From Kudoa neothunni (taxonomy: Eukaryota > Animalia > Cnidaria): a DNA stretch of 64,000 bases. Shown one piece after another: positions 36,692 to 59,800 of this stretch. A program made the translations under genes and the position numbers. The stretch is from the NCBI GenBank assembly GCA_964304625.1, contig OZ199840.1, positions 6,637,252 to 6,701,251 on the forward strand, given 5' to 3'. The stretch's first letter is position 1; each line of letters begins with the position of its first letter. Under the pieces are notes generated by a model that saw nothing but the letters and a program-made list of their open reading frames with translations, was not told the origin of the DNA and did no database searches.

Positions 36692-39520
36692 CCCATTCAG
36701 GGTTTTCGTTGCGTTTTCGCAACAAAATGTATTTGATTATATAACAACATATAAAATTATTATTTTAAATGTATTCTGTTATTTTAAATACCCAAACATA
36801 TTAATTTATGGAAACAAATATTATTGGAGTTAATTCATATTTTAAGTTTGAACAAAATATGATTTTATGTGCTATTTTTGAAATTCCAACTAGACGAACA
36901 CCAACTAGAGTTTCGCCTAACAAAGATCATGAAAATCTTATTAAAAAACGCATCAACTGCCATTTGTCATTTAATATCTATATATGATAATGAATGCATC
37001 AAAGGATTAATGAATAAATATTTATTTGTAAAAAACATGTGTTGCGAAAACGGAACGAAAATCCCGAACGGGGTAATTGTGCGCGCTGCTTTAAGTATCA
37101 CTGTATAATGGATCCAAAATCGTACATGAATCTTTTTGATGCAATCAAAGAGTATGAAGATAACGAAAATCTAGAGTCGATTGATTTTGTGTTATTACCC
37201 CCTGAAAAAGTCGACGCTCTTACAGATACTGAGGATAATTTTGAATCCAATTTTAATGGCATATGTGACATCAATTTAATGTCTGAGACGTGTGGAGAAA
37301 TTGAAGTATCTTCTGAGGCTCTTGAATCCTTCGTAAATGATGATGCCTTGATATGGACTGATAAAACTAATGTCGATTCTACTCAAGAAAAATCAAAATT
37401 TTTATGTCAGAATGAGACTATATTAATCAATCGGAATATGGATAATTTTTCATCAATACTTGATGGGAACTTAAATTCTTATGGAACTTTTTTGGAGTTA
37501 TCTGATGAAAATTTATTTACACGCATCGTGAAACAATCTAATTTATATGCGAGCCAGAATAACAACCATGACTTTCATGTTACGATTAGTGAAATGAAAT
37601 CATTTATCGGTATTCTGATTTTGTCTGGTTATCATAGATTAGCACGCCAGTCTATGTATGGGGAATCTTCTCCAGACGCTGGTGTTGAACTCGTTAAAGT
37701 ACAATGACCTACAAACGCTTCAAATCTATAAAAAATTCATCCATTTTAATAATTCAAATATTGACACCACCGATAGATTTTTCAAGGTACGCCCTTTAAT
37801 TCAAGAATTTAACAAAAATTTCAAAAAATTTGGAATATTTGAAAAATATACATCTGTGGACGAGCAGATGGTACCTTATACTGGTAGGCATTCCGCTAAA
37901 ATGTTTATGAAAAATAAACCAATTAGATTCGGCTTCAAGCAATGGGTTATGTCATCATCCTCCGGTTACATGTATAGTTTTGACGTGTATAGTAGAAAGT
38001 CAGCAAATTATGATAAAAAATATGGTTTGGGTGGTAGTGTCGTAATCTCTTTTGCGGATGAAGTAAAAAATGAAAAAGATCTCAATATGTTCTTCGATAA
38101 TTTTTTTACTTCTCATAAATTATTACAAGAGCTCAAAAGAAGAAATATCAAGACTACTGGAACGTTAAGATCAAACAGAATATCAAATTGCCCTGTTACT
38201 CCCCAACAAGTAATGACAAAAAAACCAAGGGGAGAATTTGAGATGTTTTCTGATGATCAACAAGGTATTCATTGCATTCAATGGAATGATACAAAACCTG
38301 TTATCGCATTGAGTAATTGCTACACCGCTCACCCTCTCCAAAGCATCAAAAGATACTGTAGGTCGAAGAAAAAAGAAATTACTATTTGTCAGCCATTTAT
38401 GATATGTGCATATAATAAGTTTATGGGTGGAGTAGATATTGCCGATAATTTAATTTCTTGTTATAGAATTAACATAAAAGGAAAAAAATGGTATTGGCCC
38501 ATTTTTACGAATATGATATCAATGGCAGTAGTAAATTCATGGAGGATTTATAATATTGTAAATAACACACAAATTGACTTGTTGAAACATGTCAGGAATA
38601 TAGTGACTGACTTGGTAACATCCACAAAAACCAGCATTGGCCGAAAGTCTCTGTTGGGTAAATTGCAGAACGCAAATCTATGTAATAAACCAACATTGGT
38701 GTCTCATCCTCACAAAATAAGACGTAGGTGTGTGGTATGTAAAAACACTACCATCCATATTTGTAAAAGTTGTGGAAATCATATTCATATAAAGTGCTCG
38801 GGGCTGTTCCACAAGTAAATGATTAAAATTATAATTTTCTTGTAGATAACTTTTTTTTCTCATGTATTTGACAAATATTATTTATGTGCGTTGTAATCTT
38901 ATTCCCATACAAGGAAAGTTTTTCATTGCATTTTTGGAATCTAAACACTTCTCGAATATACTCTTTTATAATTTAATTTTTTTCGATTATTTTTTTAGAT
39001 GATTATTATAATCGTTATTAAGTCTAATACCAGATATGTAAAAACTACAAAATTGTAAGTTAAATGGGTTAAAGGTGTAAAATTTAATCTCACAAGGCAA
39101 AATGAGGGATTAGTTAGAGGTTTTGTTACTAGTAAGGAAATATTGTTGAAATATGAACTAAAAATAATTTTTTATCGCTAATCTGGGCTAAGAAGACCGA
39201 GTGACACTCAAACGTACTACAACCCATATCATTAAAAAATATAGAAAACAAAAAAATATAAATTTTTCGATAATATGTCACATAGGTATTACTAAATTGT
39301 TGCTTAAAATTCAATGTTTTTGTTAATTTCATTTGTCACGTGACACGCAAATTTATATACCACACAAGTTTTTCGTTGCGTTTTCGCAACATTGCAAAAA
39401 CCTACGTATCTTTGTAAGGAGATGAAATTTTAAAATAGTTTTTTTAAAATCAATAATAATATTGTTATTTTTACTTAATATTGTAATCTTACAAAAATAC
39501 AAAATTGGAACCTGAATGGG
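36692..39520 (+). mobile_element. piggyBac element E (PGBD2/3-like clade)
   Basis: Perfect TIR CCCATTCAGG with TTAA on both sides. GTTGCGTTTTCGCAAC palindromes at 36708 and 39375. Confidence 0.95.
37108..38818 (+). pseudogene. piggyBac transposase of element E, full length apart from two 1-nt deletions near 37697 and 37732
   Basis: SVDEQM, FFDNFFT, GGVDIAD triad; KKWYW; C-terminal CVVC..CKSC..HIKC. The segment VKSTMTYKRFKSIKKFIH is recoverable by adding one A to each of two A-runs. Confidence 0.88.
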
Positions 39521-52659: not shown

Positions 52660-52925
52660 GTGTGCACAATAAGGTGGGGTTTCACTGGTTCTTGGAAACT
52701 TAACGAAGATTTCACGTGTGCCGACGGTGTTGTATTCGGGATTTTGCACCAAAATTAGACGTTACCATAATTAGCTGAATATTTCCTCTCGGTATTCCTT
52801 TATTTTATTATGAACATTCGTGAAAGAATCGACGAAAAAAAATGATGCGCAAAAGGGGTGTTTTTCGGAGCCACATCCTACCCTATTACCCAATCATATT
52901 GACTGGAAGACGAATCCTCAATTAA

Positions 52926-55339
52926 CCCATATAGACTCGGTACCCTTTGTCCTTAAGTTACAGAGCTATAATTTTGTATATACTCTCAAAATACATTTGT
53001 GAATTATATATTTTAAAATAAAAAAAATATCTTTGTTTTAACATACTCTTTAACATGTTGCGTTAACGCAACATATAATCTACAGCGACCATAGGGATTA
53101 ATGGATTAAATTTATTTATAATCGTATACATAACTTTGTTTTGAAAAAAACAAGCATGAAAATAATAAAATAATTGAGTGTAAGGTACCAGTTAATGAAG
53201 TTTGTTAAAACAAGTAGGGTGACATGGCAAACAGCAACCACGACAAACAAACACAGTATTGGACTTGCAAATTTTGCATCTTGCTCTTTTTTCATCCGTA
53301 CGTCGCTCAATAGTTTTATCGCTACATAAATTGCGTGTAAATTGGAAAGATACTGAGGATATGCGTTTTCTTGTTGTATCGAATTTGACAGTTAAAAGTT
53401 TTGACACAAGCGTTCTTCGAAACATAAGGGAATCCCCAGTATCAGGATGGAGCAATTTAAATATTTTTTGTGAATTGGAAACTGCCATATCGATATAATT
53501 GCAAAATATATTCCAATACCACTTTTTTCCAGCTATTGAAATTCTGTAGGTGGCAATAGCTGAATCGAGGGAATCGACGCCACCCATATAACGGTTATAG
53601 CTGGCAACAACGTTTGGCATTGGAATATACACATCTCTTTTATTACCCTTAGAATACCTTCTGGCATTCTTTATTGGTTCAATTTGATCAAAATTTGTCC
53701 CTATAATAACTGGCCTGGTATCATTCCATTTAACCAGCATCACTTTGTTGGCATTGTATGATTCAAAAAAACCACGATTTTCTTTTTTGAAAACTGTATC
53801 GCATGTAAATGGACACTTCAGGGTCCTATTTTGTCGAACCGTTCCGGTGGCTTTTACGTTTAAAGAAGACAAATAGTTTAAAAGTCCCACTGAAGTGAAG
53901 AAATTGTCGAAATAAAACTCGTGGAGTCTAGGATATTCGACCAATTTCACAAAGTTTTTTACGACACTACCACCTAACCCTAATTTCTTATCTATGTTTG
54001 TTCCTTTTCCACAATAAATGTCTGTGGAGAAGACATAGCCATCGTACGAACATAGACACCAACATTTAAAACCAAATTTGATTGGTTTACCTTTTATATA
54101 CATTTTTGCGGAATGATGTCCAAAATAAGGTATCATTTGTTCGTCGATGGAAAGACATCTCGAAAAGTAACCGAATCGTTGAAAGTTTTTGTTCAAGATG
54201 TTCATATAATTTCTAACCTTAAAAAAGCGATCATTTTTATATGCATCATCAGAAAGTAAATTATTGTCGCATAAGTGAATATATTTTTTTATTTGTGTGA
54301 ATCTTTTGTAGGACATACATTTCTTTACTGCTTCAACACCGCAATCCATACCTTCTTCCCAATACATTCGTTGTCTTGGAAGATGGTTATAACCACTCAA
54401 TATCAAAATTCCAATAAAATTCATCAATTCATTTTTTTCAATGTCAAAATCAATCTCGTTATTTTGACCGGCATATGTGACACTTTCTTTAATAATCAAA
54501 TTTAAGACATTGGAATCAAAGAACAATTCAAAAATCTCGCGTTCATCCATTGCAACAATCGTGGGTTCAAATTTATCCAAGTAAAAGTCACAACCATCTA
54601 ATAAAATACTTAAGATTATGTATAAAAACCCTTTCGTTTATACCTTCCAGAGAAATATCTGGATCCCTATTGGATACAGATCTGTTTGAGTAATCATTAA
54701 GCTCCCAACAGAATAATTCGTCTTCAATATCGTCAAAATCTTTATTAATTACTTCCACTTGACATGATATTTCTTTGTTGAGTTGATTATCGCTGAAAGT
54801 ATTCGTGTCTTCGTCATTTGTACTTTCGTTATCAGTTACAACATCAACCCTTTCTGGAGGAATAATAACTATATCGATCAGATTTTCATCCGCATTTTCT
54901 TCGATTTCATTTATTACGTCAAGGTATAGATTATAGCGCTTGTTCTCCATTTTATGACAAAATTGTCGCCGTAGATTATATGTTGCGTTCGCGCAACAAA
55001 AATTGATCCTTATATTAAACTTTGAAGGAAACTTTTTAGATCGCTTCTTTCATTTTAAGGACAATTATCATATCATGATCTAATTATTTTTAAATTATTG
55101 GCATCATTGAGTTTAACGCTATGAAATAAACGGAAGAATATGAAAACACTTCAATGATGACCTTTCGCACATTTAATTATAGTCACATTTTAAATTGCAG
55201 AAGTTATTTTTTTCTAAAAATAAAAATTTATGTATTCTTCTAAATAATTAAATCAATTTTGTGTCATCGTACCCACTAACGTATGAGAAAAATAACAACA
55301 AAGTTTTGTTGCGTTATTGCAACATATAGTCTATACGGG
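52926..55339 (-). mobile_element. piggyBac element F (PGBD2/3-like clade), apparently complete
   Basis: TIR CCC(A/G)TATAGACT with TTAA on both sides. GTTGCG-N4-(C/T)GCAAC palindromes at 53057, 54982, 55308. Confidence 0.95.
53192..54950 (-). CDS. piggyBac transposase, 570 aa, two exons (54950-54644 and 54597-53192)
   Basis: A 46-nt GT-AG intron (54643-54598) joins the 120-aa and 462-aa ORFs in frame. SIDEQM, YFDNFFT, GGVDSLD triad and C-terminal CKIC..CRGC..CHPTC are intact. Confidence 0.85.
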
Positions 55340-55796
55340 TTAATTTTTCGGCGTCGTCGAACATATTTCAAAAATCATTTAAATAAAGGGGTATATAATT
55401 AAGCATAGATAAAAAATATACTTTAGTATCAATAAAAATTTAAATTAGCGAAACACGCTGTGCTTTCCCGACAACTCTGAATGGATTAATTTTCGTCAAT
55501 CTTCTATCGGCACGTAAAAACCATAACACTTCTTTTTTATTATTAAACTTAAAATAATTGATATTTTAACCATATAAACTCATATATAAGCAGTTTAAAA
55601 AGATTATAATATTGATCTGGTGGTAAAATTAGATATATTATAAGGCGACATATTTTAAAATTCGTATTTTTACAATAATACGGCATCATATTCAATTTAT
55701 TCTTATCCTTCTTAAACTCTAATATATTATAAAAAGATTGAATAAATTTCATGACGCCCATATAAATGTGTCAAGAATTATAAGCAAAAGTATCAT

Positions 55797-56860: not shown

Positions 56861-59800
56861 ATGGATGACGCTGAGCCTAACACAGATTCTCAGAATGAGC
56901 TCAATGATGTATTTAGTTCAAGAATAGGTATAATATTCCCTCCGCCAGAAGTGAAAGGTAACCATTTTCACATCTATTATTTTCATTAGTTGTACGGTTA
57001 ACGTTATTTGTGTGTATTTTTAGCCATTGTGGATAAAACGGCACTTTTTGTGTCAAAAAATGGTAAAAACATTGCATTCAAATGATAGGCATTGTTATTT
57101 GAATTGGATGTATTAGGAATCGAATTTGAAGAAAGAATTCGAGCCAATGAAGCAAATAATTTAAAATTTAACTTTTTGAATCAAAATGACCCATATTTTG
57201 GATATTATCAATATAAATTGAAAGAAAATGCTGAACAATTAATCAATTCTCATGCAAAAATAACTTCAGGCAATTAAATTTGCATTAATTTTAATGTATT
57301 TATAATTTTATTATATTAGAGCCATCAGCCAACATCAAAACTACTACAGTTGGTGGAAACAATTACGAAGTTGAGATGGCTGGTGAGATACCGACTCCTG
57401 ATGACGATTCTGCTCTGCTCGGAGGAACTGTTAGCTATTATGAAAAGTTAATGAAAGACACTACGCTAGTACTATCATACAAACTAAATATATTATCTAT
57501 AATGATGTTTAGTCATATGAGAAAATTGTTGAGATACCTAAATACACGGAAGTAGAGCTCCAAAGTGTTGTTCTTCCAAAGCCATACGAATTTATGAATC
57601 CTCATCCTAACATACTACTCATGGATATGTATTTTTATTGAATTTAATCAATCTATACGATTATTCATAGAGATATTATGAAAATTACCGCACAATTTGT
57701 GGCAAAAGGTGGTCGTTTATTTTTGAATAACTTGATGCAACGTGAACAGGTAAATTTTTGCAGCTTTTAATCGCATTGTGGTTCTCAGCATTTGATAATA
57801 CGTTTTAAAACGTTAGAGGAATTATTTCTTCGATTTTCTAAAACCTCAACACTCTCTCTACACATATTTTCTTTCGCTGGTCGATCAATACACTAAAATT
57901 ATAAATCCATCCCCTTCGATGTTGGATTTAATACGCAATTCGATGGATAGCAATCAAGTGAATGTATCTTTTTTATAAGATTTTTTGTATTGATTTTGTT
58001 TTTTCGGCAATTATTCAGTTGATTAAAAGTTTAAAAGTTCGCTGTTTCTTTGAAAAACAACGTGTAGACCAAAAAGAAATCGAGGACGAAGCCAATGAAA
58101 AAGATCGAAGTAAACTCATTTTGACTTTAATTACTATTTCGAATACTTTTCTCATTTAGTTGCGTTTGCTCAGATTGATTGGCACGATTTCGTTATAGTA
58201 GAACAAGTTCATTTTAAGGACGACGATAAATCTGCACTACCCCATCCAGTTAGTTTGGAAAAACTTGGAGAGCGACTTCTTGCTCAAGAACACTATGAAG
58301 CTATGAGAGTATTTGTTTCGGCGTTCCACGCCTGTTGGCTAGTGATCAACTCATTGCTTTAGAGGGAACAAGAAGAGAAGAAATATGCTGCTTCAAATTT
58401 GGAAAATGTTTCTCAGGAACAATTAGCCAACTCATCTGCATCTGCTACACAAGTCAATGTGATCAACTCTTCAAGTGACATTCCAGAGGTAATTTCTATA
58501 CAAGTCATTTTCTTGTTTCTACAAATACTCTTTAGAATACATCAAATATTGGTACTGATGCCGATGCGGTTGCGGATGCAATAGGTGGTAAACCTTCAAA
58601 GCGAAGGTTCGAACCTGCAGATGTATCATCTTCTGTTTTCAAAAAGGCCGGCCTCATATCAAGTGATTCCACCGGTGGTGCTTCCAAAAATAAAGACAAG
58701 TAATTTTTTAATAACGTTTTGATTGTAGTTTCATGAATTTAGATTGATGGTATCGCCTATTACTGGTGAACTCATTCCTGCTGATTCCATTGCTGAGCAT
58801 ATGCGAATCAATCTGCTGGATCCAAGATATAAGGAACAAAAAGAACGTTTGTTCGCCGAGAAAAAACAACAAGACGAAGTATACACTGTGGGTTCATCTA
58901 TGGTTTCTCATTTGAAAGAATTGGCTCAACGACGTTCCGATATATTCGGACCCAGTACTCAAGAGATTCAGATTGGTAAAAAATTAGAAGATTACCAACC
59001 GGTAACCACCTACAAAACGGCGGTTCCTATTGTCAATTCGTCATCCTCTCAGCCAACTGGAAACGATAAACCAAATGATAATCTTTTGAACGTTCAACAG
59101 TCAAGACTCAACAATTCATCTCATCCTATATCCAATGTACAAAAACCTCTACTATTTACACCCGTTAGTGCTAATGTGATCACCAAAGTTCCAGGTAATA
59201 GTTGATGGTGAATCAAAATGATTAAAAATTTTATTTTAAATGCAGAGGGTCTGTCCCAGCCTCAAAAATACCCTCACATGATGCCAGGCAGTAGCGGCGT
59301 TGGGATTTTCCCACAGACTCATACTCAACCGCTACCCTACAACACCCACAATACACCAGTTGGACTTCCACCACCTGCTTTCAATCCTATGGCTGCCAGA
59401 ATGCCACTTCCAATGATGAACGCCAATCCACAGTTGAGAGGCATGCCACCAACCCATCACATGATGAATTTGGGGCAACCGATGAACAATATAGCTGGTG
59501 TTGGTCTGCATGGTTTGCCCCCTCCATCGTTAGCTACTAATAGCGCTGATCCATTCGCCAAACAAGCCAATCCAATCGAAAGCATGCTTATACCTGAGGC
59601 TGTTTTCTTATCTAGCAACACCAAACATGAAATCACTCTAAAGGTAGATTATTGTTTTCTTTTTTCTTAATGCTTATTGTGCCATTGAAGATTAAAATGC
59701 CTCAAAATGAAGAATTGAACAAAAAACATGGTTGGAAACTGGAGGGTCAATTTGAGTCGATACCGTCTAATATGACGTGGAAAGTATGTGACTTTAACAG

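Follow-up and report, generated by a model that had tools for sequence, protein, structure and literature searches.

Among mobile elements of the piggyBac superfamily, Pokey of Daphnia pulex and D. pulicaria carries a single GT-AG intron of 68-84 bp that has been confirmed by sequenced RT-PCR products, and its open reading frame (ORF) was under-called before this intron was recognised (PMC3575242, PMC3849761). A survey of piggyBac-like elements describes them as single-ORF and reports introns only for the domesticated genes PGBD5, PiggyMac and TPB2 (PMC5381638). Outside piggyBac, host-type introns have been acquired by Tc1-like elements in molluscs (bioRxiv 10.1101/656579), and CACTA transposases have both gained and lost introns (PMC4158355). 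Together with the P element, these elements resemble the one described here, which we call F, in encoding a cut-and-paste transposase that requires host splicing. In the P element, retention of intron 3 regulates transposition; among these systems, we know of no other in which intron retention has this role.

Element F is a piggyBac-like element of 2414 bp in the cnidarian Kudoa neothunni, on the minus strand at positions 52926-55339 of a 64,000-nucleotide stretch (contig OZ199840.1, positions 6,637,252 to 6,701,251 of the forward strand; hereafter the window) of a genome of 40.26 Mb in 4 contigs. With a probability of roughly 0.72, the best explanation of the locus is a young piggyBac element in which a 46-nt intron is spliced out to give a 570-residue DDD transposase, the intron being an ordinary constitutive one of host type. 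Like Pokey, F is a mobile piggyBac element with a TTAA target, terminal inverted repeats (TIRs) and one short GT-AG intron in its transposase gene. However, Pokey measures 6-7 kb and targets rDNA, whereas F measures 2.4 kb and occupies dispersed TTAA sites, and splicing has been seen by RT-PCR in Pokey, whereas in F it is predicted from sequence. In Pokey a long exon 1 precedes the intron and an exon 2 of 585 bp follows it, which puts it towards the 3' end of the gene, while that of F lies near the 5' end, ahead of the DDE core; since the positions differ, the two introns represent independent gains. An earlier sequence-only reading of this DNA had implied that an intron-bearing piggyBac element was a novelty, which overstates the case given the RT-PCR-confirmed intron of Pokey (PMC3575242, PMC3849761): introns in mobile piggyBac elements are uncommon and were already known from Pokey, and F is a further case. 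It leaves what is known of piggyBac mechanism and regulation unchanged, and offers a clean, datable intron gain in a mobile gene. The 570-residue product is readable only from the spliced model, and mining for single long ORFs would miss or shorten such elements, as happened at first with Pokey (PMC3849761).

Trichoplusia ni piggyBac and Myotis piggyBat (PDB 6x67, 9c0f) share with F the TTAA target, CCC..GGG ends, the DDD core and a C-terminal cross-brace cysteine-rich domain, although their transposases are encoded by single ORFs and that of F is split by the 46-nt segment. In T. ni piggyBac, TGCGT/ACGCA motifs at LE17-33, LI180-196 and RE45-61 are bound by the cysteine-rich domain and are required for transposition (PMC5861402). 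Greater similarity, with identities of up to 47%, links F to the 'PGBD3-like' elements found in arthropods, Gordionus and Trichinella. PGBD5, PiggyMac and TPB2 resemble F in that a piggyBac-derived coding sequence contains spliceosomal introns (PMC5381638), but these are immobile, single-copy host genes that lack ends and often have altered catalytic residues, in contrast to F, which retains its ends, is flanked by target-site duplications and occurs in many copies, some of them inserted recently.

Ends, insertion sites and copies of element F

The anatomy and coordinates that the sequence-only reading gave for F proved correct in every detail that we checked. The two ends (CCCGTATAGACT / CCCATATAGACT) form 12-nt inverted repeats with one mismatch and, as is the rule for piggyBac TIRs, start with CCC and end with GGG (CCCGTATAGACT / AGTCTATATGGG). 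The 5' TIR, CCCGTATAGACT (55328-55339, minus strand), is found at the same end of 9/9 full-length copies and lies in a stretch that is 94% complementary to 52920-52937 (inverted-repeat pair I7), while the 3' TIR, ending ...AGTCTATATGGG (52926-52937, minus strand), is supported by the inverted-repeat listing and by comparison of the copies. TTAA target-site duplications flank the element at 55340-55343 on the 5' side, where four empty-site paralogues have a single TTAA, and at 52922-52925 on the 3' side, as read from the sequence, the copies and the empty sites.

Three palindromes of the form GTTGCG....CGCAAC are present, all on the minus strand: a left-end palindrome, GTTGCAATAACGCAAC (55308-55323; element positions 17-32), a left-internal palindrome, GTTGCGCGAACGCAAC (54982-54997; element positions 343-358; inverted-repeat pairs I1 and I2), which lies about 30 nt 5' of the ATG, and a right-end palindrome, GTTGCGTTAACGCAAC (53057-53072; element positions 2268-2283; inverted-repeat pairs I2 and I8). 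The left-end site occupies positions 17-32 in F and 17-33 in T. ni piggyBac, and both elements also have left-internal and right-end sites, although the internal and right-end sites are spaced differently in F and in T. ni piggyBac. By analogy, the left-end palindrome is likely to be a binding site of the cysteine-rich domain, and the common offset of this motif suggests that F shares its mode of end recognition with T. ni piggyBac. A candidate poly(A) signal, AATAAA, at 53111-53116 (minus strand), 76 nt past the stop codon, is a consensus match only.

The F family comprises at least 11 copies that cover the intron site (nine full-length and two partial), with identities of 87-100%; four of these, the window copy among them, are 99.5-100% identical. 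Every full-length copy has different flanks, with TTAA on both sides except at the 3' side of one copy (L008), which has CTAA. The window copy is itself flanked by another repeat, and in four paralogues of this repeat the two flanks adjoin with only one TTAA between them; these four empty sites prove that the window copy inserted precisely at TTAA. In a DNA run of the same organism, word depth was about 16-21 on F and 3-4 on its flanks, a ratio of about five, and contigs from this run extend from the ends of F into the flanks of another copy, L003. Both exons are intact, with an ATG, in the window copy and in two others (L002 and L004), while L003 has lost its ATG and older copies contain stops and deletions. 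The claim of a mobile, apparently intact piggyBac element was borne out by the TTAA duplications, the TIRs, the DDD residues, the cysteine-rich domain and the copies at distinct sites. The family is young and probably still autonomous, and its encoded protein would be active. Three copies with intact exons, and near-identical siblings at different sites, make F a possible source of a new active piggyBac vector.

Patterns of substitution among the copies show that the family has been under purifying selection while carrying the 46-nt segment. Omega was 0.29 for changes found in two or more old copies (25 synonymous versus 29 non-synonymous; p = 9e-6 for the synonymous excess) and 0.68 for private differences. 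In the old copies the untranslated ends have diverged by 9.5-11%, compared with 4-7% for the exons. For exon 1 taken alone, pairwise omega ranged from 0.32 to 0.67 on 12-21 changes, a weak indication of selection on this exon.

The window copy departs from its siblings at two positions. Its left-end palindrome reads TGCAA owing to a private G>A change (element strand) at 55318, where 7/8 other full-length copies have TGCG(A/T), the site in the eighth copy not being recovered by pattern search. A private CGT>CAT change (element strand) at position 54384 replaces R with H at codon 174, and DNA run X1 carries the sibling base at this position (T>C on the plus strand). Because of these two changes, the window copy may be less mobile than its siblings, or slightly impaired. 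Two further observations concern individual copies. One contig from run X1 (depth 4.7, compared with about 21) skips 36 nt of exon 2 at 54282-54319, with ends of the AT..AC type, and may represent an unassembled F copy with an in-frame deletion or a contig artefact. An old F copy at G000:C1:7126335-7133027 lies in three pieces (L010, L013 and L014), separated by about 4.2 kb of inserted DNA near element position 470 and about 130 bp near position 750, and its intron donor is mutated to AT.

A transposase gene divided by a 46-nt segment

The ORF listing of the window places a 120-residue ORF at 54588-54950 and a 462-residue ORF, in a different frame, at 53192-54580. As had been claimed from the sequence alone, a 46-nt GT..AG segment (54598-54643, minus strand; GTATAA...TTATTAG) can be removed as a predicted phase-1 spliceosomal intron, which joins the two frames across GAA G|AT GGT into 570 codons plus a stop. 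Exon 1 (54644-54950, minus strand) would then consist of 102 codons, counted from the ATG, and the first base of the split codon, and exon 2 (53192-54597, minus strand) of 467 codons and the stop, with the DDE_Tnp_1_7 domain, the DDD aspartates and the cysteine-rich domain.

Protein searches were carried out with exon 1 and exon 2 separately. Exon 1 encodes an acidic N-terminal region with a conserved DIVIIPPE..VTD motif and matches positions 13-76 of a profile built from 60 single-ORF homologues (E = 4e-11), in which exon 2 begins at position 127; on this homology, exon 1 is part of the F transposase. It is open in 6/9 copies. Exon 2, from 54595, matches positions 2-348 of the 349 in DDE_Tnp_1_7 (PF13843; E = 3e-81), and the piggyBat structure 9c0f with E = 2.5e-29. 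The motifs that hold the DDD aspartates, SIDEQ (from 54151), YFDNF (from 53914) and GGVDSLD (from 53584), all on the minus strand, align with the matching motifs of piggyBat and of the 60 homologues, and mark the putative catalytic aspartates of F. The C-terminal cysteine-rich domain (from 53281, minus strand; motif RCKIC..C..C..CH..C..H) has seven Cys and two His in RCKICKSNTVFVCRGCCLPCHPTCFNKLH, a tail that aligns with the C-terminus of the homologue profile; its alignment with piggyBat is a weak second stretch that is not significant alone, and Pfam PF13842 gave no match to this tail reaching E = 0.01. In the protein collection searched, the best match to F was 46% identical, and no sister element of another species was found there.

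The 46-nt segment is very probably a spliceosomal intron, judging from its conservation, its position and its likeness to host introns. Its GC content is 0.22, compared with 0.34 in the exons of F. It is present in 11/11 genomic copies that cover the site, and 10/11 keep GT..AG; the donor is AT in one decayed copy, and one copy has a 1-nt deletion. None of the 11 copies has a continuous ORF through the segment, so that the sister copy made continuous by a 1-nt indel, which the sequence-only reading had named as evidence against an intron, was not encountered among them. Near the break in the reading frame, 13 GT/GC..AG pairs would restore the frame, of which only 54643-54598 both fits the length of host introns and keeps the conserved residues, sparing a conserved W and the FELFF block.

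For comparison with host introns we used one gene, the adjacent SF3A1/PRP21-like gene (window 56861-59202, plus strand), whose 11 introns measure 42-67 nt with a median of 50. Its reading frame is open over 588 codons after these introns are removed, and Pfam identifies Surp and PRP21_like_P domains that are split over the exons. Ten of the introns are GT-AG and one is GC-AG, apparently that at 57270-57319 (GCAATT..TATTAG); the donors are GTA, GTG or GCA, +5G occurs in 0/11 and the acceptors end in TTAG in 9/11. With its 46 nt and a donor lacking +5G, the segment in F resembles the introns of this host gene, as proposed previously, and its acceptor, TTATTAG, agrees with theirs as well.

The spliced product is also colinear with its relatives. 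By tblastn, 42 residues of spliced F correspond to 44 in L043, a sibling of element E of another piggyBac family in this genome, and 22 correspond to 26 in a further locus, L069, whereas unspliced F would be 15 residues longer than spliced F and out of frame. The agreement in length between E and spliced F that had been noted earlier held on recounting by eye from the ORF translations, where the span bounded by the N-terminal W and the F-x-E-L motif came to 43 residues for E and 41 for spliced F.

An intron at this site is absent from eight loci of the same genome (L043, L044, L058, L066, L067, L068, L069 and L070), which are continuous there and belong to between two and five other piggyBac families whose identity to F is about 41-54%; 60 database homologues are likewise continuous at the site. 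These comparisons uphold the proposal that the intron was gained in the F lineage, and the gain is well supported from sequence, while splicing in vivo would follow from the spliced model. An introner-like origin of the intron was considered and rejected, as a 66-nt probe matched only the 11 F copies in the genome.

Transcripts were looked for in RNA runs filed under the name of this organism. Three raw-read runs (X5-X7) gave 0 reads over 6 kb that include both F and SF3A1, and the organism is not in them; since SF3A1 also had no reads, these runs say nothing about splicing of F. Small runs (X8-X17) contained none of the sequence words of F, which is no proof of silence.

Probable constitutive splicing and its alternatives

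Taken together, the conservation of the segment among the copies, the homology of exon 1, the colinearity with relatives, the host style of the intron, the uniqueness of the splice pair and the signature of selection make a spliced 570-residue transposase the best reading of the locus. Under this reading the F transposase gene would have acquired one short intron in a stretch of low conservation that links the acidic N-terminal region to the DDE core. The spliceosome of the host would excise the 46 nt and join the exons through a split GAT codon; the resulting DDD transposase of 570 residues would carry the cysteine-rich domain at its C-terminus. If it acts as T. ni piggyBac does, this transposase would bind the TGCG/CGCA palindromes close to the two ends, cut the element out and paste it at TTAA. 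The intron most likely acts as a constitutive host-like intron and not as a switch.

The sequence-only reading had gone further and proposed that splicing gates transposition. In such a scheme splicing would be limited to certain stages or tissues and retention would keep the element from moving, a scheme for which intron 3 of the P element provides a precedent. One part of the proposal is sound, in that the exon 1 frame is open over 54588-54950 and a retained intron would end the protein as an acidic peptide of 120 residues (pI 4.05); an exact look-up in public assemblies found no record of this retained-intron ORF. The gate itself is unsupported. The F intron resembles the constitutive introns of SF3A1, the predicted RNA fold around the splice sites is no better than that of shuffled sequences (z = -0.83), no Rfam family matches F or its intron at E up to 1, old copies show no greater conservation of the intron than of the exons, and the 120-residue product has neither a DNA-binding nor a catalytic part. 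The same fold score led us to reject a candidate RNA hairpin over the 5' splice site (GTATAAA/TTTATAC). On this evidence we regard regulated retention as very improbable.

It is also unlikely, if rather less so, that the 46 nt are an old disabling insertion that is never spliced, the F copies having been moved in trans by another piggyBac family or by a protein made from exon 2 only, which would start at an internal ATG (MDEREIF...) and lack the acidic N-terminus. The genome has more than 90 piggyBac-like matches, and open frames of 563-601 residues among them could in principle supply a transposase; clear evidence of selection is confined to exon 2; and N-terminally truncated T. ni piggyBac has been reported to remain active. 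This reading does not account well for exon 1, which is open in 6/9 copies and keeps the N-terminal motif of the wider family, nor for a segment with exact GT..AG boundaries and host-like length and composition whose removal restores the frame with near-perfect colinearity. Moreover, protein identity between F and the other families does not exceed 54%, and cross-mobilisation at that distance is doubtful. A programmed +1 ribosomal frameshift would dispense with splicing altogether: the exon 1 frame is open to 54588 and the exon 2 frame from 54637, and a shift within this 47-nt overlap would yield a fusion of 585 residues. We find this scarcely credible, as the fusion would contain 15 extra residues where spliced F already fits its relatives, the RNA fold is unremarkable, and GT..AG at exactly the positions that restore the frame is better explained by an intron; +1 frameshifting is, besides, rare in eukaryotes.

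Other transposons of the genome

Element E (window 37039-38818, plus strand) is a disrupted member of a piggyBac family that lacks introns. Three of its siblings (L043, L045 and L058), about 95% identical, are open in one frame over 592-601 residues, whereas E has private deletions of 1 nt and 3 nt near 37695 that split its ORF. The frame change in E was considered as a second intron or frameshift site and rejected, since it results from the private 1-nt deletion and the siblings are in frame. For a genome of 40 Mb, piggyBac-like transposases are very abundant, as 93 of 1287 first-look candidates gave scored matches, and several piggyBac families here have open frames of 563-601 residues and may be intact.

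Outside the piggyBac superfamily, a Tigger/pogo-like transposase (L065 1507-3080; G000:C3, about 4073006-4074579) is open over 482 codons if three gaps, measuring 45, 44 and 36 nt, are taken out. The boundaries of these gaps are GTATAG..TTTAAG, GTATTA..TTATAG and GTAATA..TTCTAG, respectively, and the element appears from its sequence to carry introns of host size. With introns in both F and the Tigger-like element, F would be one case of a wider habit among the transposons of this host, a hint that the acquisition of introns by transposons recurs here. We also considered whether the intron might be functional equipment, either as a stage- or tissue-specific gate of the P-element kind or as a mark of 'self' that aids expression of the transposon and its escape from silencing. 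In the latter form it would serve several superfamilies in this genome (piggyBac F, the Tigger-like element and possibly others). We hold a functional role of this kind to be decidedly unlikely.

The 3' flank of F contains a repeat of about 230 bp (window about 52660-52890) that occurs at least 40 times in the genome. Many of its copies form inverted pairs 1.5-3 kb apart, as at C2:444680/446345 and C1:9235956/9238093, and have the appearance of termini belonging to a different DNA transposon family.
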